Shown: positions 11,726 to 64,000 of the stretch, in pieces | How positions within the stretch are numbered: position 1 is the stretch's first letter | How the letters are laid out: each line of letters starts with the position of its first letter | Assembly (NCBI GenBank): GCA_950097015.1 | Contig: CATNEN010000007.1 | Coordinates: 9,238,001-9,302,000, forward strand | Length of the DNA: 64,000 nt | Origin: Macrostomum hystrix | Lineage: Eukaryota > Animalia > Platyhelminthes | Direction: 5' to 3' | The notes under the pieces: model-generated | Seen by the model: the letters and a program-made list of their open reading frames with translations, nothing else | Database searches by the model: none | What the model was told of the DNA's origin: nothing | Program-made: the position numbers and the translations under genes

Positions 11726-14670
11726 TAGACAGACAGCCTTAGACAGCCCTAGACAGCTTTAGACAGCTTTAGACAGCCTTAGACAGCTTTAGACAGCTTT
11801 AGACAGCTTTAGACAGCCTTAGACAGCCTTAGACAGCCTTAGACAGCCTTAGACAGGCTTAGACAGCCTTAGACAGCCTTAGACAGCCTTAGACAGCCTT
11901 AGACAGCCTTAGACAGCCTTAGACAGCCTTAGACAGCCTTAGACAGCCTTAGACAGCCTTAGACAGCTTTAGACAGCCTTAGACAGCCTTAGACAGCTTT
12001 AGACAGGCTTAGACAGCCTTAGACAGCCTTAGACAGCCTTAGACAGCCTTAGACAGCCTTAGACAGCCTTAGACAGCTTTAGACAGGCTTAGACAGCCTT
12101 AGACAGCTTTAGACAGGCTTAGACAGCCTTAGACAGCCTTAGACAGCCTTAGACAGCCTTAGACAGCCTTAGACAGCCTTAGACAGCCTTAGACAGCCTT
12201 AGACAGCCTTAGACAGGCTTAGACAGCCTTAGACAGCCTTAGACAGCCTTAGACAGCCTTAGACAGCCTTAGACAGGCTTAGACAGCCTTAGACAGCCTT
12301 AGACAGCCTTAGACAGCCTTAGACAGCCTTAGACAGCTTTAGACAGGCTTAGACAGCCTTAGACAGCTTTAGACAGGCTTAGACAGCCTTAGACAGCCTT
12401 AGACAGCCTTAGACAGCCTTAGACAGCCTTAGACAGCCTTAGACAGCTTTAGACAGGCTTAGACAGCCTTAGACAGCTTTAGACAGGCTTAGACAGCCTT
12501 AGACAGCCTTAGACAGCCTTAGACAGCCTTAGACAGCCTTAGACAGCCTTAGACAGCCTTAGACAGCCTTAGGCAGCCTTAGTCAGCTTTAGACAGGCTT
12601 AGACAGCCTTAGACAGCTTTAGACAGGCTTAGACAGCCTTAGACAGCCTTAGACAGCCTTAGACAGCCTTAGACAGCCTTAGGCAGCCTTAGTCAGCTTT
12701 AGACAGGCTTAGACAGCCTTAGACAGCTTTAGACAGGCTTAGACAGGCTTAGACAGCCTTAGACAGCCTTAGACAGCCTTAGACAGCCTTAGACAGCCTT
12801 AGACAGCCTTAGACAGCCTTAGACAGCTTTAGACAGGCTTAGACAGCCTTAGACAGCTTTAGACAGGCTTAGACAGCCTTAGACAGCTTTAGACAGGCTT
12901 AGACAGCCTTAGACAGTCTTAGACAGCCTTAGACAGCCTTAGGCAGCCTTAGCTTTAGACAGGCTTAGACAGCCTTAGACAGCTTTAGACAGGCTTAGAC
13001 AGCCTTAGACAGCTTTAGACAGGCTTAGACAGCCTTAGACAGTCTTAGACAGCCTTAGACAGCCTTAGACAGCCTTAGGCAGCCTTAGACAGCTTTAGAC
13101 AGGCTTAGACAGCCTTAGACAGCTTTAGACAGCCTTAGACAGCCTTAGACAGCCTTAGACAGCCTTAGACAGCCTTAGACAGCCTTAGACAGCCTTAGAC
13201 AGCCTTAGACAGCCTTAGACAGCTTTAGACAGCCTTAGACAGCCTTAGACAGCCTTAGACAGCCTTAGACAGCCTTAGACAGCCTTAGACAGCCTTAGAC
13301 AGCCTTAGACAGCCTTAGACAGCCTTAGACAGCCTTAGACAGCCTTAGACAGCTTTAGACAGGCTTAGACAGCCTTAGACAGCTTTAGACAGGCTTAGAC
13401 AGCCTTAGACAGCCTTAGACAGCCTTAGACAGCCTTAGACAGCCTTAGGCAGCCTTAGTCAGCTTTAGACAGGCTTAGACAGCCTTAGACAGCTTTAGAC
13501 AGGCTTAGACAGGCTTAGACAGCCTTAGACAGCCTTAGACAGCCTTAGACAGCCTTAGACAGCCTTAGACAGCCTTAGACAGCCTTAGACAGCTTTAGAC
13601 AGACTTAGACAGCCTTAGACAGCTTTAGACAGGCTTAGACAGCCTTAGACAGCTTTAGACAGGCTTAGACAGCCTTAGACAGTCTTAGACAGCCTTAGAC
13701 AGCCTTAGGCAGCCTTAGCTTTAGACAGGCTTAGACAGCCTTAGACAGCTTTAGACAGGCTTAGACAGCCTTAGACAGCTTTAGACAGGCTTAGACAGCC
13801 TTAGACAGTCTTAGACAGCCTTAGACAGCCTTAGACAGCCTTAGGCAGCCTTAGACAGCTTTAGACAGGCTTAGACAGCCTTAGACAGCTTTAGACAGCC
13901 TTAGGCAGCCCTAGACAGCTTTAGACAGCCTTAGACAGCCTTAGACAGCTTTAGACAGGCTTAGACAGCCTTAGACAGCTTTAGACAGGCTTAGACAGCC
14001 TTAGACAGCTTTAGACAGGCTTAGACAGCCTTAGACAGCCTTAGACAGCCTTAGACAGCCTTAGACAGCCTTGGACAGCCTTAGACAGCCTTAGACAGCT
14101 TTAGACAGGCTTAGACAGCCTTAGACAGCTTTAGACAGCCTTAGGCAGCCCTAGACAGCTTTAGACAGCCTTAGACAGCCTTAGACAGCTTTAGACAGGC
14201 TTAGACAGCCTTAGACAGCTTTAGACAGGCTTAGACAGCCTTAGACAGCTTTAGACAGGCTTAGACAGCCTTAGACAGCTTTAGACAGGCTTAGACAGCC
14301 TTAGACAGCTTTAGACAGGCTTAGACAGCCTTAGACAGCCTTAGACAGCCTTAGACAGCCTTAGACAGCCTTAGACAGCCTTAGACAGCCTTAGACAGCC
14401 TTAGACAGCCTTAGACAGCTTTAGACACGCTCAGACAGCCTTAGACAGCTTTAGACAGCCTTAGGCAGCCCTAGACAGCTTTAGACAGCCTTAGACAGCC
14501 TTAGACAGCTTTAGACAGGCTTAGACAGCCTTAGACAGCTTTAGACAGGCTTAGACAGCCTTAGACAGCTTTAGACAGGCTTAGACAGCCTTAGACAGCT
14601 TTAGACAGGCTTAGACAGCCTTAGACAGTCTTAGACAGCCTTAGACAGCCTTAGACAGCCTTAGGCATGT
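11726..14670. repeat. ~2.9-kb 10-bp satellite (AGACAGCCTT)n with variant units
   Basis: About 290 units; variants AGACAGCTTT, AGACAGGCTT and AGGCAGCCTT recur in set orders. Confidence 0.99.
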
Positions 14671-17854: not shown

Positions 17855-19510
17855 GGCCCGGTGGGGTAGGTCTGATTCGGTCAGTGGGTTAAAAGGCCCG
17901 GTGGGGTAGGTCTGATTCGGTCAGTGGGTTAAAAGCCCGGTGGGGTAGGTCTGATTCGGTCAGTGGGTTAAAAACCCGGTGGGGTAGGTCTGATTCGGTC
18001 AGTGGGTTAAAAGGCCCGGTGGGGTAGGTCTGATTCGGTCAGTGGGTTAAAAGGCCCGGTGGGGTAGGTCTGATTCGGTCAGTGGGTTAAAAACCCGGTG
18101 GGGTAGGTCTGATTCGGTCAGTGGGTTAAAAGGCCCGGTGGGGTAGGTCTGATTCGGTCAGTGGGTTAAAAGGCCCGGTGGGGTAGGTCTGATTCGGTCA
18201 GTGGGTTAAAAGCCCGGTGGGGTAGGTCTGATTCGGTCAGTGGGTTAAAAGGCCCGGTGGGGTAGGTCTGATTCGGTCAGTGGGTTAAAGGCCCGGTGGG
18301 GTAGGTCTGATTCGGTCAGTGGGTTAAAAGGCCCGGTGGGGTAGGTCTGATTCGGTCAGTGGGTTAAAAGGCCCGGTGGGGTAGGTCTGATTCGGTCAGT
18401 GGGTTAAAAGGCCCGGTGGGGTAGGTCTGATTCGGTCAGTGGGTTAAAAGCCCGGTGGGGTAGGTCTGATTCGGTCAGTGGGTTAAAAGCCCGGTGGGGT
18501 AGGTCTGATTCGGTCAGTGGGTTAAAAGGCCCGGTGGGGTAGGTCTGATTCGGTCAGTGGGTTAAAAGGCCCGGTGGGGTAGGTCTGATTCGGTCAGTGG
18601 GTTAAAAGGCCCGGTGGGGTAGGTCTGATTCGGTCAGTGGGTTAAAAGCCCGGTGGGGTAGGTCTGATTCGGTCAGTGGGTTAAAAGCCCGGTGGGGTAG
18701 GTCTGATTCGGTCAGTGGGTTAAAAGGCCCGGTGGGGTAGGTCTGATTCGGTCAGTGGGTTAAAAGCCCGGTGGGGTAGGTCTGATTCGGTCAGTGGGTT
18801 AAAAGCCCGGTGGGGTAGGTCTGATTCGGTCAGTGGGTTAAAAGCCCGGTGGGGTAGGTCTGATTCGGTCAGTGGGTTAAAAACCCGGTGGGGTAGGTCT
18901 GATTCGGTCAGTGGGTTAAAAACCCGGTGGGGTAGGTCTGATTCGGTCAGTGGGTTAAAAGCCCGGTGGGGTAGGTCTGATTCGGTCAGTGGGTTAAAAG
19001 GCCCGGTGGGGTAGGTCTGATTCGGTCAGTGGGTTAAAAGCCCGGTGGGGTAGGTCTGATTCGGTCAGTGGGTTAAAAGCCCGGTGGGGTAGGTCTGATT
19101 CGGTCAGTGGGTTAAAAGCCCGGTGGGGTAGGTCTGATTCGGTCAGTGGGTTAAAAGCCCGGTGGGGTAGGTCTGATTCGGTCAGTGGGTTAAAAGCCCG
19201 GTGGGGTAGGTCTGATTCGGTCAGTGGGTTAAAAGCCCGGTGGGGTAGGTCTGATTCGGTCAGTGGGTTAAAAACCCGGTGGGGTAGGTCTGATTCGGTC
19301 AGTGGGTTAAAAGCCCGGTGGGGTAGGTCTGATTCGGTCAGTGGGTTAAAAACCCGGTGGGGTAGGTCTGATTCGGTCAGTGGGTTAAAAGCCCGGTGGG
19401 GTAGGTCTGATTCGGTCAGTGGGTTAAAAGCCCGGTGGGGTAGGTCTGATTCGGTCAGTGGGTTAAAAGGCCCGGTGGGGTAGGTCTGATTCGGTCAGTG
19501 GGTTAAAAGG
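17855..19510. repeat. 39/40-bp minisatellite (GGCCCGGTGGGGTAGGTCTGATTCGGTCAGTGGGTTAAAA)n
   Basis: About 42 near-identical head-to-tail units with no spacers; variation is confined to the AAAA/GG/CCC junction. Confidence 0.98.
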
Positions 19511-51762: not shown

Positions 51763-54700
51763 TCAAGATTCGGTCATGGCAGCCAGCTTCTGTCTCACAG
51801 CTTCAATCCGATCTTCATCCTGCGTCTCCAAAGCCGCGCGTCGCTCGTCCATGACAGCGTCCATCTGGTGCAGGCAGAACTCTACATGCTCCTGGCAGTT
51901 GCTGTAGTTGGCCAGCGCGTGCAGCTCCTCCAAGTCGGGGTCCGTCTCGAGCTCTCTACGTCAGTCGTCAAACACCTGTTCTTGACCGCCGAACAGCTCA
52001 GCCTGTAGGCTCAATGCCAGGCTGTGAAAGTTTACGAACAGGTGAGCGGAGCGAGGCTTAGCAAGTCGAGCTGTGAGCAGCAAGCAGGTGAATGCGGGCA
52101 GTCCGCGCGGCTGCTGCGGCGGCCGGCTCCACGGCAGGCAGATTCGCCAGGCCCAATCAGAGTCGACAGGCCATTGCCACTCGTAGGTTTTGCGTGGCGT
52201 GGATAGAAGCTTCATTAGATTGATGTTTCGATAGTCCAAATCGTTACTCAGAAAATCTAATGGCCTGAAAGATGGGGCCGGCAATCCGAATCTTCCTGAA
52301 AAATCTTCGATTTCAACAATTCTGGGCAAAGTGTTCGGCTTCCAGCTCCTCTGCACTGCCTGCCCGGTAAGCAGTTTCATCTCCGCCTCCGCTGCGGCTC
52401 TGTTGCCCAGTCTGAGGTGCACCATGGCTTGCAGGCAATGCACGGCGGACCTGCACCATCCCTGACCTTTGAGTGGAGCTAACGGACGCAGAACTTCCGT
52501 GCCATCGATCTCGCCCCAGTCTGGTTGTAGCAGCTCAGTGAGGCAGCCGCGCACCACGCTATAGAAATTCACTTAGCTTGTGAAGCTTTCCGTCCTTGTC
52601 GCTGACTCTGACGCCGTCAATCGGCAGTACTAGCGGCAGCTGTGTCAGTGGATGGAAGTAGAAGTCCTCCGATTCTAGTGAGCTTTTGCTCTAGCGATTC
52701 TTTGCGTGGTAGGTCTTGAGGCCAGGTTTGCCCATAACCTTCGGCAGCAGCCTCTTGAAGACAAACTTGATGATCACAAATAGCTGTCCCTGAATTGTAT
52801 TTAGGCTCCTCATCAGTTTTTTCACCTTAAAGCTGAAGCTCACACGTAGCTCGTTGGTGACATTTGGGCGCGTGGCTCGGACCACGTGAACATTTTCGCC
52901 TGGGTCTAGTTGCAGCTTGTCGAGCGGGTTCCGGCCGTAGCCGCTGCAGCAGGGGTAGGCGTGGCAAGTGTCCTGGGCCGTTCGAACGCGACAGGTGGAC
53001 ACGGCCACGGCTGGTTGGCTGCCTGCAGTTGCAAATGACACTGGATCTGTCTGTTTGGATCGAAACGGAAAGCTCAACTGGGACTTACCAGCCGGTGCCT
53101 TCATCTGAGCGGGCCCCTCGACAATCTTCAACAGTCCACCGGTTTTGATACTTTGCAGCACAGCGACAGCGTTCTTGGATGTGCTGCTTTTCCGCCGCCT
53201 GATGGATGTTGCAATCGATATCAGAGTCAGCTGCGGTCCTGCCGTTTACCTGGGCGAGGCTGTTTCCCCAGCCTTCTGCGAAGCTGCCAGTGAGTTCCCG
53301 GTTATCGCCTGTGACGATGCGGGCCATGCTCTGCAAGAAATCTGCCATTCTCTGCAGGCACCTGGCTCTGTCCTCGGTGAAGCCTGCGCTGTTTAGCAGC
53401 TCGTGCAGATCTCGGCTGAGTTTCTGTTTCTGCTGCTTTCTAGATTCGATAAGGATGTATTGAGCTAGCAATGATCGAGGACTTTTAAGTTGACTATTTT
53501 ATCAAGCTTTCAAGATTGAATCTGATATAAAATTTAATACTAGTAGATATTGTACAGTTAAGTCTCTGTCCTTTAATAACTATAGTAGTTCGTACTAATG
53601 CTTCACTTACGTTAATTCTGCAGTCACTCGGCGCATTGTTTGAAGAGCAACTGAGAACTTCCTCACCACTGCAATTGGCGCCAAGGGAAAGAGATAGTAA
53701 GCAATGGATTTCTCATATGTTTTTATTGACAAGCACAGCTCATTTAAAACCCACCTAGAGTCCATGAACAGCTTTAGCACTTCAGTGCGACCATAGTGCT
53801 CAGCAAGCTGCTTACACGCGACCTTTTGCACGTCTCGTTGCTCTGGATCAGTAATTTGGTCGAACAGTGTCCAGGTGGTGCGCACCTGACCTGCCTGAAC
53901 AGCACGCAGCAGAGCTGTCTTGCCGTCAATATCCCGAACCTCTATGGCCGCACCACGTTCGAGCAGACGAGCAACAAGCTCGTCATGGCCCTCCTCGGAC
54001 GCCAGCATGAGCGCCGTGCTGCCTGACGTGCCGTCTTGAAGATTCATATCAGACACATGAGGCAGCAGAGCAGCTGCGAGACCTACCTGAGCAGTAGAAA
54101 TCCAGGCGAGCAATAGTTTGAACATGTCCGCCTGACAAAGCTGCGTCCCCAAAACTACAACGAAAGACGTCATGCTTTCCAGATCATCGCTGTTTGCAGC
54201 ACTTCGCGCTGCCTCCAAACAACACGAGGCTTTCAACTGGGCGTCAGAGATGGCCGCAATGACCTCGGGGACAGTTGTGAAATGACCGCCATCGATCCAA
54301 ATTCTCGCTGCTTCTTCACAGCACTGGGCCTTGAGCTCTGGTTCTGTTATGCTTTGAACAAAGAGATCAACGAGATTCAGATCTCCTGCTAAAGCTGAAA
54401 GCTTGGCTGCTTGATTGCAGCAGTGGCTCTTAAGTAGCTGGTCATCAATGGTAATGACGGCTTCGTTGTTACTGAGGTGGCCCTTTTCTGCCGCAAATTT
54501 GGCAGCCTCGTAGCATCAGTTCGATTTCGTACCTGAGTCCTCAATGGCTTGCACCAGAAAGTCTGCAGTGTCCAAGTAGCCGGCCTGGGCTGCAGTCTTC
54601 GCAGCCTCCGCACAGATCAGAGATTTTAGCATCGTGTCATGCAGCTCCGGCACCAGCAGTGCTAGGCCCTCAAAGTCATCGGAGCCTGCAGCAACTTCTA

Positions 54701-57162
54701 TCGCCCTCAATATGAGGCAAAGCTTCAGTTCCTTGTCTGCTATTTCAAGCACATCGTTTGCGCTGTTCTTCAGGAGGTCCTCTTTGGTTGCAATTTCTGC
54801 AACCTCATTGCAGATTTCAGTTTTTTGCTTTCATTACTGATGGCTTGCACAAGAAGGTCAGAGACTTCTAGAAAGCCGCTTCTGCACCAACGATTGCAGA
54901 TTCTGAGCAGCATAGGTTCCTAAACACTAAATCCTTGATGCCGGACAATATTGGTGGCGATGCTTTTAAGTTCTCCCGATTTTGCGGAGGCCTCAATGGC
55001 TTCTCTCTGGCACTGAGTTCGAGTTTCTTTTCTGCCAATGCTTTGGATCAGATAAGTCATCATTTCTCGGTCTCCATTAGTAGCCGCAATTTTTGCTACC
55101 TCCCTGTAACACTCATCCTTTAGTTGAGGAAAACTGATAGTTACTCCACATCCAAGAGATGACTGTTGAAAGCCAAGGTAGAAGCAACAGATTTGCAGCA
55201 CCTGTCTCTAAAAAGATCATCCGTGATTCCTTGCGTCAGAAGGCTTAGGGAATCTAAGTGACCACACTCTGCAGCTACATTTGCGACCTGCTCGCAAAAG
55301 TGATCGTTCAGAATGCTTTCTGAAATGGCGGACACTGCCTGGACAACATTATGTAATTCGACAATATTTTTGTCCCTTGCTAGCAACTTGGCAGTCCTCT
55401 CGCAGCACTGCTTCTTCAGCGTTTGGGACAATGTTGCTTCAACTAACTGTGATATCTCTTCAAGCTTGTCAGGGCCTTGCTTAGCTAAGGATTTCGCCAG
55501 CTTAGTGCAAAAATTATCCCGTAGTTGCTGGTCTTGGATTTCAGTTGTCATCTCGATTCCCGGGCCCGTCTGCCAGGTTCTTCTGTTAACTAGCCGTTTA
55601 GCAGCTCTCCGGCAGCACCTGTCCTTTATCTCTCTATCAGAAATCGCAGCAGCGAGCTGTGACAGCGAGGTGACGCAGCTAAATTCAGAATCGTTTTCCA
55701 TTGCAAGCTCGATGCACAGGTCCTTTATCTCCGGGTCCTGAATTGAGAGCACTTCGAAAGCGGAAAGTTTCTATAATAACCTCTGTCTTTAAAACACTTA
55801 GTGTTGCCTTGCAACAGTGCAACTTCGATTCTCTATCAATAATTGCCTGGATGAAGGAACTTGCCGCGCGAAGATCGCCTTTGAATCCTGCCCGAATAAC
55901 AGCCTCAGAGCAGCAGGCGTTCCTTAGATCCGAGTCAGTGACAAAGGTTTTGACAGATTCTACATTAGCCAAGTGTGTAACCGCGTATTCAGCTGCATCC
56001 TTGGATGCTTGCTTCTTCAGATTTGTCAGAGATGGCTACGACGTAGTCATTCATCACCTCGAGCTGGCCAGCTTTGGCTGCAATGACGGCCCCTTCAAGG
56101 CAACATGAATCCCGCAGTTGCCCGTCACGAATATTCTGGAAAACGCTGCTTGAATCGGACAACTGCCCAGCGTACGAGGCACATTCTGTGACATCCTGGC
56201 AGCACTTCGTTTTAAGTTTCTGATCTTTTATCACTTGCACCAAGTAGCTTGCTGTCGCTAGCTGGCCGCTTGATCCCGCCAGTGCAGCGGCCTTGCTGCA
56301 GCACTCGTCTTTTAGCTCGGGATCCTCTATGGCCTCAGCCAAAAACTTCACTGCCTTCAGGCCGCCTCCGATTGTGCAGATGGTCAGTGTCTCCTTGCAG
56401 CAGGCGTCCTTCAGCTCGGGACAAGCGATGGCTTGGACGAGTTGCTGCATCAAGTCCAAATCACTCCTTCTCGCAGCGACAAGCGCAGGGGGCCTGCAAC
56501 AGTGGTCATTTAGCTGCTGATCAGAGATTTGAGCCAGAATTGAGACGCGCTCACTCAGGTAGCCACAATTTGCAGCTATTTTCATTGCTTCTTCACAGCA
56601 TTGCACCTTTAGTGTTACGTGATTGATTCTATTCACGTAGGTTGGCGAGGTGCTGGAAGAACCTCGGCGAGGCGACCAGCAGTTTCGGCAGCCACCTTGC
56701 AGCAATGATTGCGGAGTGTCTGATCGGTAATGCTTGCAATGAATCCGGCGTCGTTCAGTCGACCCAGCTTGACGAAGATGTTTGCCGTATCTATGCAGCA
56801 GCTTTCCTTTAGTCTTTCATCAGAAATGGACCCCAATAGCGTCCCAACTGTCTCGAGCTGGTCGCCGCAATCGGAGCAGCAACGGCGCAGCAGCAATCTC
56901 TGAGATCCACGTCTTCAATGGCCAGCAAGACGTCCGCCACTCCGTCAACTTGGAAAAGACCGCGCTCTGCGGCCAGCTGTGCCACAGCCTTGCAGCTACG
57001 GTGTCTGCTCTTTTGATCTCCGTCTGATAAGGCGTTCTTCGCGGCATCCAAGAAGCTTGCGCCATCCTTTGCCAGTTGAAAGGCGAGTATCGGCTCGAAG
57101 GTTTCCTGTCTGATAGAGATCTTCCACATCTCCCTGTTGAAGTCCGGAGCTTGTGCCTCCAT
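51763..57162 (-). pseudogene. Disrupted gene: Cys-Cys ankyrin-like repeat array + canonical ankyrin repeats + cGAS/Mab-21-like nucleotidyltransferase + helical C-terminus
   Basis: Consecutive overlapping ORF fragments from 57162 downward. 33-aa repeats; canonical ANK (GSTALMLASEEGH, GKTALLRAVQAGQ). NTase motifs TGSFAEG..DSDID, QDTCHAYPC, VHVV, ELRVSFS..KKLMRSL..Q..LFVIIK and LKTYHAK. Roughly ten frameshifts, plus an in-frame TGA at 51961-51963 followed by 65 more coding-like codons. Confidence 0.8.
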
Positions 57163-57734
57163 GTTTTTAGACCTTGCTGGTTCTTTCTGTGCTAATTAAG
57201 CTTTTATGTTAAGTAGATTGCAGCACTTTAGCAACTCGTGTCTTGAAGCTCGTAAGTAAAGTTTTTCGAAAACCTGATTTTCCAGTGTCCAATGGGCGTC
57301 TAATAAAGAACCACTTGTACGCCTCTGAATTTGCTCAGGACAATACCTCACTGTACGTTTTACCTGCAGTTGTACAAACAGTACTCGCTTAAACCCTCCT
57401 TTTTTGCTTCACCGTACACCCCTAGTGCATTTCCTCTCTTTTTCCTGAAACTGCACACTCCGCAATGCTTCTCATCATATCGTTTCGAGACATTTTACCA
57501 TAAGAATCGATTCGGATTAGTTGGGGCTCTTTCCAAGACGCAATGGCCATATTCTAAGGTAAAAATTGGGTCAATTTAGCGGAAAATTTGCTTAAGTTTC
57601 TCACGTTGAAAAAAAATTGTGCAATTGTGCATACTTCGAAAAGACAATCTATAAAGTAATTTTCAATCTTCAAGTAAATTGAAGAAAATTCTAGTAATTT
57701 TGTCTCTGCCATGGAGTGGTATACTATTGACATT

Positions 57735-59828
57735 TCAAAGAGTCCGCGCCAGCATCTGCAGATGTCGCTCAATGTGCTCAGGTGCCCAGCCGCCCAGCAG
57801 TAGGGGTACGCGAATCTTCCAGGGGCTTGCCAGCTCGCGTAGCCGGCCCACCGGGATAGCGGCGATGTCGCGAGCTGTGTCCTCCGGGGACGCGAAGTCC
57901 AGGCTGGAGGGGCTCTTGTGGTACTTGCTGTAAAAATGCGCGATTCCATGCAGATTTGTCATTATACATCGAGCTGTTGCGACTTGGTGTAAAAGCCTCG
58001 ACAAAATTTTTTTTGTATAGGAACAATCATGATTTATACACCTAAACTTATCAAAAAAAATTCCAGTTAGAAGACTTTACAGGCACAAACCCGCCAGTGA
58101 CATCTCCCGGCTCATATCCATCGCACTTAGATTCAACAGCCAGGGCGCCTAAGTATTGCTAAGCCTCCTATTAACAATTAACCTGTCCTCAGCTTGACAT
58201 AATGCATTTTCTAGAATATCCAAACCTCACTAAAACCGCCTGGCCTCACAAAGTAATCGTGAAGTTCTAAATCGGCTTGTCAGAAGTTCAGCGCAGTTCG
58301 CTACTTACGGCAAGGCCAGCTGGGCGCTGTCGGTGCCAATCAGGCCCAGCACGGCCAGGCCGGCGTGCACAGCCGAGCCGTTCATCGCCAGCTCCTGGCG
58401 CAGCGCCGAGAAGAATCCCTCCAGAGTGCGCTTGGAGGCGCAGTACTCGTAGCAGTAGGGAATGGGCAGGCGGGCTGCGACCGAGGACACCAGCACGAGG
58501 CTGCCGGCGGACTTCTCCAGGTGCGGCAGTGCGGCACGGGCGGCCTCCGCGTAGCTGAAGTAGTTGGTCTGCATGGCGGCCAGATGCCTCTGTGCCGACT
58601 CGGGCTCAGCCTGCGGCAGCGTTGCAAGGTCCGATGGGTTGATGTGGTTCACCACTACGATATCCAGACCGCCGCCCATTGCAGCGGCAGCTTCGGCCAC
58701 CACTTGGGCGGCTCGTCCGGGCGAGGACATGTCACCAGCGATGGCGTGCACGCTGGCTGCTCCCAGTCTGCGACATTCCGCAGACACCTGCCAGATTTTC
58801 GTGTCGTTTTACTAGTTAATTTTTTTTCTGAACGAGTCGATGCTTTATTGAATCTTCAAGACATGTTCAATCCTGAAGAGTTCGTTTTCTGCTATTGCGT
58901 CGAATTCCTGTTTACTCATATAATTACTTTGAACTGCAGGAGGGCTGCGGACAATGGCACATAGTTTTGTGACGCTAGACCCGCAGCCAGCGAGGAGGCA
59001 ATTCTGCCCATTCCGCTGACTCCTGAGCACACACGCACACAAATACCGTACGCAGGCACACGCTCACACAGGTGTGAACATCTGCCCTGACTTACTCATC
59101 GTCAGACAGTGTCCACTTCACTGTGCCTTGGAGTTTAGCACTCAAGGGCGTAAACTGCGCGAAAAGCCTTCTCTCCGCGGCTGCGCCCCAAATAAATGTG
59201 GCCTCGCCGCGGAATCGAACTTAGGGACCTTGGCGCGAGAGGCAAAGCGTAAAAGCTCTGCCACCGGCCCCTCTTTTTACTCATACTTTTTGACTCAGCA
59301 GGATTGGCAGTGTTATTTCTGTAATTCTTTCAATGAAAGAACCTACATTTCTATCCCCTTCTCTGACTACCTGTATTACTCGCTAGGCTTATCTTAAAGA
59401 ATTGTTTTTTATTTTTCTATTGCCGCTATTTTTAGTTTTAAAAAACTTCTCTCAATTCTTTCTGCTGCGTTGCTCAGTAAAGGATTAACTTTTTTTCAAA
59501 AAAGTTGAAACAGGTCCGGGCTGCAGCTATTTCTATTGTTGCTCTGCTAGAAGCAGTTCATTGACTCAAAGTCGAAGCCAACCTTCTGAAGCGACTCCAG
59601 CTGCCTGGCGTGCACGGTCACGTGAGCTCCCAGCCCGGCGTACACCTGCGCAAGGGCCTCCCCGATGCCCCGGCTGGAGCCGGTGACGAGGACTCGCTTG
59701 CCGGCCGTGTTCTCCCTGCTGGCCCGGTGCCAATGGCTGGCGTACAGGTCGTAGAACAGGTTTCGCGCAGCGTTGAACAGCACGAAGAAGAGCACAAGGC
59801 CCAGAGCGCCACGGATAATCAAATTCAT
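57735..59828 (-). CDS. Short-chain dehydrogenase/reductase, 11beta-hydroxysteroid dehydrogenase 1-like, 3 exons
   Basis: Exons 59828-59583, 58787-58309 and 57927-57735, GT-AG and in frame. N-terminal hydrophobic anchor, TGSSRGIG, VVNH, NYFSY, VSS (catalytic Ser), YCASK and LGLIGTDSA. Confidence 0.92.
58933..59271 (-). mobile_element. tRNA-SINE copy, near full length, in SDR intron 1
   Basis: Homologous to the other copies; B-box GTTCGATTCC on the minus strand. Confidence 0.87.
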
Positions 59829-61102
59829 TGCAGCTCTGCGCGGAAAACTTTTGCTTGTTGGCACAGAAAAGCATTCAATGTAGCTGCGAGTTACAGGTGT
59901 GCGAGAGTGTTTAAAGGGAGCTGCTTATCTGCTTAGAAAATATCGATAGTGTCATAAATGCGCTCACTGTCTCTGCCCCAGTTACTGCATGGCCACTAGA
60001 ATTCGCCAGCACTAAGCTATTGTATGTGGAGCACGAAAGGTCGAAGAACCTCAAATTGTTATTTAACAGATTTTATTGTTTATAGTAATTTTTCAAGTGG
60101 CACAGCTGCAGCTACTTCGCGGTTCACCCAATGGCTGCTTACAGCTGTACAGTATATGGTATAAACTCAAGTAAATTCTGGATGGTTTCGAAAAAAAGAG
60201 TTTGAAACTAACATTAAAAGTTAAAATCTCTAACAGAAAAAAAATGTTTTAAAGTGCAGTCATTTTGTCTGTTTTCTGCCCGAATTTGAATTACAAAGGA
60301 TGATAACTTCATTTTAAGTTACCTGAAAGACCTGAAAGATTTGCTGCTTTTAATGGAAACTTGCCCCAGCACTGACTCACAGTCAAGCTAAGTGTGAGAG
60401 ATACAATTCAGACTACTGACAGTAGAAAAGCAAAGACTTGGCTGCAAAACTCTCACATAACACTACAAAGTATCGCCATAAAAATGGCAAGCTTAAAAGA
60501 GACTTCTGTGCACACTAAGAGTGGTGGGAGAGGACGGCGTGTGGCTATGGCTGACTGACGAAGGCAAACAAGCCAGAAACCGGTCTCGGTCTGCCAGCGC
60601 GAGGTTCGTTCCCCACTTTTAGAGTGTTACACTAAGACTGGACTATGGGCAGAGTTTTTCTGTGGGCAGAAGAAGGCCGACTGGCTGGTAAAAATGCCAA
60701 GTAAACGGCAACGATGGCAATTTCAAGCCCAATGCAAATGCTCTATAGGACCCGCACTGTACATATGCTGCACTGTCTTATTGCTAAAAATAGGCGTTGT
60801 TCGCTCAAGCCGCTGCTGCAATGAACAGCTCAGGAGACAAAGCCAGCCCTAAATGCAACTGCTATTTGCCATTCATACTCATTGTTCCGTGTTGTTTTTG
60901 AGATTTAACCATATCAAATGTTGGTAGTGTAAATCGATTGCGACAGATGGGTAAGTTATACGTTAGTCTATTCTTTCTCATTTTCAAAGATTTGAATAAG
61001 GATTTCAAATGTAAGCCTGAAAAATCAAAAGGCAAAACTGAATCTTTCTTTCCACCAAAAGCGTCCTCGGCTGAGCTGAGCCAAGTCGATGGCTTAGCAG
61101 CA

Positions 61103-64000
61103 ATGGGCATCGCTGATCAAGTTGACGAGCTGCTGCTGGGCACAGCTGACAACACTGGTCGGTTGGAAGCCTTTGTTCAGCGCGCTCTGATTAAAGCTAT
61201 TCGTTGCGGCCATTGCAGCCTGGTGCGACACCTGCTCCGACGCTGGTCGGCCGACTCCAACCACAGCTACTCAGAGATGTTCAGGATCACGCCTCTGGGA
61301 ATGGCGGCACGCTTGGGAAACTCGGAGATTGTTGCCAGTCTGCTGGAAGCCGGCGCTGACCCGGACTTGCCCGAGCAGCGCTTGCTCGGTTACCAGCCGC
61401 TGCGCTACGCTGTGAAGGCTGGTCACCGGCACGTCGTCGAGCTGCTGTTTCGCGCTGGCGCCACGCCCGACAGCCGCATCAGCTCGGGGTACTGTGCTCT
61501 TGCCTGCGCCGTTGAGAATGGCGACCATGACATTGTCCACATATTAGTCTGCAATTCACGCATCAATCCATCGTTTCTCGGTGGTGAGGTGCTCACAACC
61601 GCCTTGTGCCTGGCTGTTCAAGAGAGCCCCGAAATAGTTAGGTTGCTGTTGGCCTGTGGTGCCGACCCGAATCGATGCAGCCGAGGGTTGAACAAGCAGC
61701 CTAAAGACTTAAACGGAACGCCAATTATGGTGGCTGCTAGGTCCTGCTCCTTGACGACAATTGAACATCTTCTGAGGGCCGGTGCGAATCCCAATCCCGA
61801 CGTTAACTCAGCAGACCAACAGCCAGCGATTGTGGCAGCCAGATTCTGCGCCTGGCCCATCATTGCCAGACTCCTAGAGGCTATCAAGGACGCCTCTGAT
61901 GATGATGAGAAAAGTAACAGTTTGCTGCTACGGTGCTCAAATGCAGCCGCTTGTGCCTGTAATGGCCCTGTGCTTCAGGAACTGTTGAAATTTCGAGAGG
62001 TTAGGGAATTTTTATCCACCGATCCGTCTCTTCGGCAAGGACTATACTCGCTGGCTGAAAACATAGCGAGAGGAAATTCAGATAACATAGAGCTCTTTTG
62101 TCAAATATTGAACATGAGGAGCGAAGAAGATAAACAGCATTTTTTTAAACAAGCGATAAGCTATTCCGCTCAGGAAGAACAGCAAGACAGTGCAAAGAAA
62201 CTACTCAACTTGTGGTCACCACCCGATGTGGAGCGAAAGCAACTTCTCGGTCGCATTCTGAGTACAGCCGTACACTCTGGTTCTGAGAATACTATGCGAA
62301 TGGCGATCAACTTTGGTCTCCGCCCTGCAGTCGACTTAAGCGCCTCCGATTGCGACTTCCTGATTGCAAGAGCTCTGGAAAGAACTGATTCGAAAGCGCT
62401 ATCAATATTGCTGGAAAACGGTCTCAGCATTGCCGAATTCATTGAGCACAAGCCCGATAGGTTAGTCCGCTCCCTGGATACTGAGGCAGCTAATTGCAGT
62501 AAGAACATTATGTGCTTTGTACTCGGTCACCTGACATCCGTTCAGGTTCAGGCTGTTGCCCACGCTGCTATCACTGGTGGCTTCATCGCGTTAAGTATAT
62601 CACTGGTGGCCAACTTGGAAGATCTTAGCTGCCGATCAACCAACACCGACAACTGGACCCTGCTGATGCGAGCAGCGGACAGAGGCTACGTTGAAATCGT
62701 CCAGGCTCTGCTTGCTAAAGGAGTCGATCGCGAGGAGACTGTCGAAGGACCTCACGGACTCCGATCGGCACTGGACATTGCTCGAAGCGCCGGGCATCAG
62801 GCCATTGTGAACCTACTGGACGGCTCGAGTCAGTTACTGCCATCTGACCATACGGAAGGCACTTCTTTCTGGTAAATTTTGACCGTAATTAATTTGAGTT
62901 ATGACCGTATTGAAATGGCTAGAGGAAAAGCTTAAAAATTTTAATGGCTTCCTTTTGTAGCACTTCCAGTCCTCCATTTCCGGCAGTAGACTTTAGAATT
63001 ATGCTTCAGGAGATTCAGATCAGGTGAGCATAGAAATTGCCCATAAAAAATTTCTTACATAAACATTTTCAAACCTATTATTGTTATTTATTGATATCTT
63101 GGATGAAGTTCAGAGTACAATAACCCGCTAAGAACAGTGCGCTTTCGAATATGCTCCCAGACTTGCCTCTGAGTGTTGATCATGTAGATAAGATGATTTT
63201 TGATGAGCTAGACCGGTCCATCACATTACCTCGCATTAAAATTGAAAGACGCTGTAATTCTGCTAATGAATTACCCCTGACAACACAAATCGTCAGCGAA
63301 TGTCCGACAGAGGACGCAGCGATGAGTCAGCGCCTGCACCAGCTACTTGTGAGTGCAGGATTCACGCAGGAGAGAGCCCAGTTCCAGTGTCAGATGGCGG
63401 AGTTCCTGCAGAAGCTCGCAGGTCATGCACTCCGGCCAGATCGGCGTGTCATGACCGGTAGCTACTCGGACGGCTGGGGCAACAGCCTCGTGCAGGTGAC
63501 AGGCAAAACCGCCAGAGACTCTGACATTGATTGGACCGTCATCCAGGAAGGGGAGACGTTTCACATCTTCTTCGGCTGCCAGTGTGTGAATGTGCGACGG
63601 CTGCGTCTGGAGGTTGTCGAGGGTCACGCAAAGATTGAGGCGCATGCAGGTGCGTCTGCAAAAATTGACTGCCCAATTTTTTCCATTACTTACTCGTACT
63701 AGTTACTCGTACAACTCCCACTATGAGCTCGGATTTAAGTGCTAGAATAAGGTCTATTCTATTCAGGTGTCGCGTCGGTAAAACTCATAAAACTGAATCG
63801 CCGAACTGCAGGCAGCCAGCCGGCTGTAGCCGCTCCTCCCTGTGGAGTCCGGCCAGCCCAGGACACCTGCTACGCCTACATGTGCTGCAGCTCGTTCCAC
63901 ACGCACAGAATCAATGCCCTGATCAGCAACTCAGTCAATTGCGAGGGAAACGTGCATCTGGTACGGGCCACTCGACCAGACAAAACTGCCGAGCTGCGCG
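61103..64000 (+). CDS. Ankyrin-repeat protein fused to a cGAS/Mab-21-like nucleotidyltransferase (cGLR-like); truncated by the window end
   Basis: Predicted exons 61103-62871, 62961-63023, 63297-63649 and 63812->64000 splice in frame (phases 2, 2, 1). ANK repeats (TPLGMAARLGNSEIVASLLEAGADPD; TLLMRAADRGYVEIVQALLAKG). NTase motifs MTGSYSDG..DSDIDW, QDTCYAYMCC and NVHLVRATRP..ELR. No frameshifts seen; start codon is inferred. Confidence 0.82.

Follow-up and report, generated by a model that had tools for sequence, protein, structure and literature searches.

The subject of this work is a stretch of 64,000 nucleotides from the genome of the flatworm Macrostomum hystrix (assembly GCA_950097015.1, contig CATNEN010000007.1, positions 9,238,001 to 9,302,000; in our numbering G000:C7:9238001-9302000 of a 220-Mb genome), called the window throughout, and two loci in it, gene A and gene B, which belong to the cGAS-like receptor (cGLR) family. 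We conclude, with a probability of about 0.75, that gene B encodes an enzyme of ~1231 residues in which ankyrin (ANK) repeats are joined through a linker to a cGAS-like nucleotidyltransferase (NTase), that it belongs to a cGLR clade expanded in Macrostomum and would make a messenger, and that gene A is a dead paralogue. An earlier reading of the letters only (the sequence-only reading) had taken the two loci for a divergent pair of receptor genes.

Gene B is one spliced gene

Gene B is intact and is expressed as one spliced transcript. The sequence past the end of the window was followed in L013, where adding 60000 to a coordinate gives the window coordinate. Contigs from four public runs were placed on L013:900-5400, and those with 100% identity came from the runs X2, X3 and X4, all of one study. 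The parts of the gene are as follows.

60947 to ~1.28 kb beyond the window end, plus strand: gene B, intact, from spliced contigs
60947-60950, plus strand: end of the first exon with the likely start codon (ATG G, the ATG at 60947), from the GT..AG joint 60950>61062 in one contig of X2
61062-62871, plus strand: ANK exon, a canonical ANK array, a stretch without the quoted ANK matches, and ANK again (Pfam; contigs of X2-X4)
62461-62545, plus strand: optional 85-nt GT..AG intron within the ANK exon (joint in X2 and X4; unspliced in X3 and X4)
62961-63023, plus strand: linker exon, 63 nt (joints 62871>62961 and 63023>63297)
63297-63649, plus strand: NTase exon (sequence; identity to a M. lignano protein, see below)
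63457-63462, plus strand: residues G54-S55 of MTGS (columns aligning with GS..SD.D of canonical Mab-21 proteins)
63523-63525 and 63529-63531, plus strand: D76 and D78 of DIDW (same exon, same column alignment)
63812-64000 and on to L013:5280, 1280 bases past the window, plus strand: last exon (joint 63649>63812; Mab-21_C; cGAS in the PDB)
63862-63864, plus strand: third active-site Asp (QDT), in the last exon

The three junctions that the sequence-only reading had predicted were each found as a GT..AG joint in 100% identical contigs, 62871>62961 in three runs (X2, X3 and X4), 63023>63297 in two (X3 and X4) and 63649>63812 also in two. A single contig of 605 nt crosses the first two joints and extends 32 bases over the third. 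ANK, linker, NTase and last exons are thus connected in spliced contigs, and the proposal that ANK and NTase are parts of the same gene holds. We regard these contigs as transcript-like because consecutive GT..AG introns have been removed from otherwise identical sequence. Joined by a local frame script, the five exons give 1231 codons with the sole stop at the end; the ANK arrays lie in an open frame of 645 codons, and the last exon is an open frame of 487 codons. Removal of the optional intron at 62461-62545 shifts the frame and brings a stop 16 codons later, and its splicing may be unproductive or may yield a short ANK-only product.

The enzyme module

The assignment of the enzyme part to the Mab-21/cGAS family was borne out by profile, sequence and model. 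Pfam Mab-21_C scores 29.5 bits on the last exon of gene B, with a cut-off of 24.1, and the best sequence matches of this exon in the PDB are cGAS chains (E 1e-5). The short exons, when searched singly against Pfam, matched nothing except ANK. For the M. lignano homologue P0013 (709 residues), an AlphaFold model from a 55-row alignment has a mean predicted local distance difference test score (pLDDT) of 86.5 and a predicted template-modelling score (pTM) of 0.81. All its top matches in a Foldseek comparison with the PDB are cGAS, with E 4e-7 to 1e-5 over ~385 columns and a target-normalised template-modelling score of 0.50-0.58. A VIA-align comparison of the whole model was taken up by matches of the ANK part and was uninformative on the enzyme.

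The active site of gene B, MTGS-X20-DIDW-X54-QDT, agrees with the pattern by which Li et al. 2023 (PMC9980059) defined cGLRs, h[QT]GS X8-20 [DE]h[DE]h X50-90 h[DE]h. The sequence-only reading had named GS, DxD and a third Asp as hallmarks of the family, and they are conserved across it: of 57 aligned sequences, all have G and S, 53 have the first Asp and 52 the second, and of the 53 that are aligned at the third position 47 have Asp there. These catalytic columns match the GS..SD.D and GPA..D.V.A columns of canonical Mab-21 proteins, as identified by Pfam Mab-21 matches, and a phmmer search from a paralogue reaches proteins carrying PF03281 with the catalytic columns in register. The third Asp lies in GVRPAQDTC, shortly after GSQPAV, which is GSPAVTL in cGAS; its context in paralogues is IDT, LDI or MDF. 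After QDT, the last exon of gene B continues with the RVSFSF strand, KTYHAK and CMPHFF. The His of NVHLVRATRP was considered as a replacement of the third Asp and was rejected, as the family alignment places this strand at FYLVPK of cGAS, just before WRLSFS.

Downstream of the helix bundle, all members have ~300 residues in common that include the motifs FYFHPFTLLPL, LKFG, DWAWRFCF, YVNF and ED.D.EEL. When this C-terminal domain of gene B was modelled alone (pLDDT 83, pTM 0.83), it came out mainly helical with a small sheet. Foldseek gave no match to it below E 0.27, a wide VIA-align search gave generic TPR-like or solenoid matches only (Z up to 8.2) and no specific fold, and in the ESM Atlas recognition was low and the neighbours unrelated.

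Two kinds of repeat array

In gene B, Pfam Ank_2 matches six stretches (187.6 bits, 5e-56) and Ank_3 matches residues 571-597 of the open reading frame (ORF). The arrays lie at both ends of the 645-codon frame, as the sequence-only reading had it. For gene A it had described about 29 Cys-Cys repeats followed by ANK, and we count ~28 units of 33 residues, with the consensus I.D..LK..CC..AA..AA..G.L......LV.A, and canonical ANK repeats after them (Ank_2 46.7 bits at 53607-54236). The Cys-Cys repeat itself scores 24.3 bits with Ank_2 (E 4.6e-5), which is below the cut-off of 27.3. Its profile finds consensus ANK proteins at 1e-8 and the ANK part of FEM1B at 8e-5, and a designed PPR protein better, at 1e-10; its neighbours in the ESM Atlas are all ANK-linked clusters, weak at 0.77. 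We read it as a putative divergent solenoid of the ANK type. Cys-Cys arrays adjoin many cGLR loci on contig C1.

The family in Macrostomum

At least 144 places in the genome match the conserved exon, many of them in tandem clusters on contig C1, and among 41 longer M. lignano members Pfam finds Ank_2 in 40 and Mab-21_C in 32, in line with the large family of ANK-fused paralogues that had been proposed. A HMMER search with the enzyme part of a member at L015:2465-5314 returned 107 representatives, 75 of them below 1e-10. The family matches that were looked up are nearly all from M. lignano (two are without organism name) and are called 'ANK_REP_REGION domain-containing', 'Mab-21-like HhH/H2TH-like domain-containing' or 'uncharacterized'; the weakest matches of the search are ordinary Mab-21 proteins with PF03281 and PF20266. 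There is one canonical Mab-21 locus only in the genome (C24:4853213, 128.7 bits), presumably the developmental MAB21 gene. The terms 'rapid turnover' and 'variable sensor' would suit a family with tandem arrays, a dead copy and arrays of differing length.

The member at L015:2465-5314 (G000:C7:10395000-10403000) is intron-less, with 950 codons in a single exon. Its N-terminus has a hydrophobic segment that may be a membrane anchor or a signal, its VHLVRA strand has Glu where genes A and B have His, and directly upstream of it lies a retroelement integrase fragment (L015:1-1515). On the minus strand at L014:836-4411 (G000:C2:3316500-3325500), the last exon of a paralogue continues into ~60 tandem units of 11 residues (NHPSKLRASSV), and the two form one open frame of 1192 codons. 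At L016:3603-5987 (G000:C1:364000-372500) a cGLR last exon reads on, uninterrupted by a stop, into a region of Cys-Cys and ANK repeats, and another NTase exon lies downstream, which may be a head-to-tail gene fusion or a gene with several cGLRs; the M. lignano proteins P0001 and P0012 have two NTase modules each. A caspase domain (Peptidase_C14, 2.7e-25) was found in one of the 41 M. lignano members, and may reflect a genuine cGLR-caspase fusion or the merging of gene models. The member in L017 (G000:C3:11637000-11645000) adjoins ~3 kb of a low-complexity, coding-like repeat rich in E, K and R, both strands of which are open in several frames.

Proposed function and alternatives

The protein of gene B consists, in this order, of ankyrin arrays, a short linker, the cGAS-like NTase, the Mab-21_C helix bundle and the mostly helical C-terminal domain of ~300 residues, which is specific to the family. 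In members of the family the ankyrin or Cys-Cys arrays would supply recognition of a ligand or partner, or autoinhibition. Once activated, the enzyme of gene B would make a nucleotide second messenger, and this may be read by very divergent STING-type proteins of the same genome. A STING_LBD-like frame is present on the minus strand at L019:6530-6997 (G000:C2:9104529-9104996), where 141 of 182 profile positions are covered with E 5.7e-6; the score of 26.2 bits is obtained for the exact matched stretch only, and the 307-codon ORF of this locus had no match in Pfam.

The arrays may have another role than that of sensors. The ligand could bind at the enzyme core, as it does in cGAS, or at the C-terminal domain, with the arrays serving only to tether, oligomerise or autoinhibit the protein. 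The NTase domain of characterised cGLRs itself binds double-stranded DNA or double-stranded RNA (Li et al., PMC9980059), and the C-terminal domain is conserved family-wide. We take this possibility seriously, but on balance find it somewhat unlikely when the conservation of the arrays is considered. The closest full model to gene B is the M. lignano protein A0A1I8FV86 (P0031, 'ANK_REP_REGION domain-containing protein'), which has the same ANK-linker-NTase order; the model is truncated after CMPHFF. Identity to this protein is 72% for the NTase exon and 82% where the last exon begins, but only 44% for the ANK part, and the protein may be a paralogue rather than the orthologue. The arrays of the paralogues also vary widely in length, within open frames of 900-1810 codons. 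The low identity in the ANK part and the varying length of the arrays fit a variable recognition surface.

A number of points weigh against gene B as a messenger-making enzyme. The runs that gave its spliced contigs are not recorded as RNA, the evidence for the fold comes from a M. lignano relative with 37% identity and not from gene B, the third Asp is flanked by Q and T and not by hydrophobic residues, and the STING-like score is just below the Pfam cut-off of 27. Flatworms are not among the groups named for the 15 characterised active enzymes (PMC9980059). No flatworm member has a known activity, with none reported for the five M. lignano proteins that have been cloned, and PF03281, the Pfam model of the Mab-21 NTase core, matches the N-terminal half of no member. 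These last two points, together with a 9-residue insertion in the interval from GS to DxD and the presence of a large additional C-terminal domain without a recognised fold, could also mean that the cGAS-like fold serves something other than synthesis of cyclic nucleotides, either as a scaffold like MAB21L1 or in another kind of transfer (linear oligomers, tailing). We consider this improbable. In a family that is otherwise ~30% identical, GS and all three Asp are almost invariant, as in an active centre, which argues for one that works.

Gene A is a decayed copy

Gene A lies on the minus strand, opposite to gene B, as had been proposed. Its parts and the gene between the two loci are as follows.

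51763-57162, minus strand: gene A, pseudogene of the cGLR family
54240-57162, minus strand: N-terminus and ~28 Cys-Cys units of 33 residues, with at least 8 frame changes and one stop
53755-54236, minus strand: canonical ANK repeats (Pfam Ank_2 4.9e-12, Ank 1.5e-9)
53611-53668, minus strand: candidate linker exon flanked by AG and GT, suggested by reading of the sequence
53089-53435, minus strand: NTase exon, with LTGS (53294-53283) and DSDID (53228-53214) kept and a frameshift near 53160
53023-53088, minus strand: phase-1 intron, GT at 53088-53087 and AG at 53024-53023
51763-53022, minus strand: decayed last exon (tblastn against intact paralogues and the M. lignano protein P0014; translations)
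58305-59864, minus strand: short-chain dehydrogenase gene with two exons (Pfam adh_short 2.5e-20 and 5.4e-7)

Judged by its sequence, gene A belongs to the Cys-Cys-repeat subfamily but is a dead paralogue, from which no functional enzyme is made. The catalytic residues are kept in a broken frame: the 3' part of the NTase exon is in the frame of the ORF at 52691-53161, and the part with GS and DxD is in a different one. LKTYHAK is followed by NR and then by an in-frame TAG at 52691-52693. Between 52700 and 52678 ~100 codons are gone, equivalent to residues 772-872 of P0014, and with them CMPHFF and the entire Mab-21_C helix bundle, the homology to which is present in gene B. Further on there is a frame change near 52575 and an in-frame TGA at 51961-51963, where paralogues carry Trp. 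In the candidate linker exon, the gene B-like reading AVVRKFSVALQ is out of the frame given by the splice phases. The repeat region (57162-54240) is broken into at least 10 overlapping open segments in shifting frames. The 99-nt spacing of the repeats persists over the breaks with offsets of +2, -8 and +1, which implies that the breaks are small indels and not introns. An array of this type runs through one open frame in intact paralogues, over 900-1810 codons, and the 1810-codon frame is at C1:13854929-13859731; the conserved exons of gene A do not share one open frame.

That genes A and B are both working receptors of a divergent pair is therefore very unlikely, and we regard it as largely refuted. 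Parts of the description behind it stand. All the motifs quoted for the two loci are present in both sequences, and the same phase-1 GT..AG intron lies directly before GSQPAV, at 53023-53088 in gene A and 63650-63811 in gene B; besides this intron position, gene A retains GS, DSDID, AQDTC, RVSFSF and KTYHAK. What speaks against a working gene A is the loss of ~100 codons, the TAG and TGA stops, the frameshift in the NTase exon and the breaks in the repeat array, of which there are at least 8, while intact paralogues have a single open frame. The 'closely similar' enzymatic module does not hold either, the shared exon being only ~59% identical between the two and the module of gene A having lost the helix bundle. 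Gene A is at least as close to copies on contig C1 as to gene B, and its closest relatives have only 59-63% identity, which suggests that it is an old copy and not a twin of gene B. As to the arrangement, the two loci do point in opposite directions, outwards, but are not immediate neighbours, since the short-chain dehydrogenase gene, which is head to head with gene B, lies in between.

It is hardly credible that the lesions are assembly errors in a gene intact in the animal: indel errors do occur in long-read assemblies, but the 645- and 487-codon frames of the neighbouring gene B are clean, with zero differences from the independent contigs of X3 and X4, and the defects of gene A go beyond indels, with two base-substitution stops and a deletion of 300 nt.

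At the other end of the window, the first 27 kb (1049-26647) are crowded with unrelated minisatellite arrays of period 8-39, for example at 11731-14664 (10-nt unit, 294 copies) and 17856-19509 (39-nt unit, 98% matches). The strong skews in the composition profile are due to these arrays.

Comparison with known systems

The sequence-only reading had left it undecided whether the family had been described. At the catalogue level it is: fusions of ANK and cGLR were named by Li et al. 2023 (PMC9980059), whose Table S3 of 140 cloned enzymes includes five M. lignano cGLRs, nos. 89-93. Our literature search found no paper devoted to flatworm cGLRs. Nos. 90 and 91 (PAA45980.1 and PAA57558.1) fall within the clusters from our HMMER search of the family, and the last exon of gene B aligns with PAA45980.1 over 469 residues (E 2e-37). 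Nos. 92 and 93 (PAA93208.1 and PAA68676.1) carry the motifs of the subfamily of genes A and B, [IM]TGSYAEGWANSL..DSDIDWTVLV, GAGSQPA.., GVRPAQDTC, VHLVRATRP..RVS, GLKTYHAKTLLFFMLEK, CMPHFF and FYFHPFTLLPL, with the same C-terminal domain. They are from another species and were cloned without N-terminal repeats, and their likeness to gene B was judged by eye.

In the coral Stylophora pistillata there are ANK-cGLRs which, like gene B, combine ankyrin repeats with a cGLR core, and interaction with ligands or proteins was proposed for the repeats (Li et al. 2023). Such domains are found in 3 of 42 cGLRs of the coral, as compared to Ank_2 in 40 of 41 M. lignano members. In Macrostomum one subfamily has a Cys-Cys variant repeat, and the extra C-terminal domain was not noted for the coral. 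The flatworm proteins have in common with human and mouse cGAS an NTase fold of two lobes, the GS / [DE]h[DE] / Asp site, the strands of GSPAV and WRLSFS and the SYHxK helix. The identity is 12-15%, the loop between GS and DxD is longer in the flatworm proteins, and ANK arrays and the C-terminal domain have been added. NLRs and the bacterial STAND/Avs proteins appear to follow the same logic, with variable solenoid repeats on a conserved signalling module, tandem arrays and dead copies. The flatworm family has no NACHT or STAND ATPase, and the resemblance would be one of design only.

Meaning for the family

It is tempting to speculate that the expansion to at least 144 loci is a receptor repertoire, in which the ANK and Cys-Cys solenoids would recognise ligands other than nucleic acids, for example pathogen proteins, and binding would be transmitted to the enzyme through the C-terminal domain; another possibility is that the stacked Cys pairs sense metals or redox state. 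We hold this repertoire to be improbable. If true, it would amount to NLR-like recognition built on an output of the cGAS type, and it would explain why, among the enzymes selected for study in 2023, pools of nucleic acids yielded none from a flatworm. To our knowledge, cGLR signalling has been lost in most other flatworms.

Proteins of this kind have been described before. The present analysis corrects the picture of the locus, with one live gene and one dead, and gives a full-length ANK-cGLR with transcript support in a genus of regenerating flatworms that serves as a model. The near-universal fusion to ANK, the Cys-Cys subfamily, the conserved C-terminal domain and the tandem arrays are starting points for work on what cGLRs sense outside the vertebrates.

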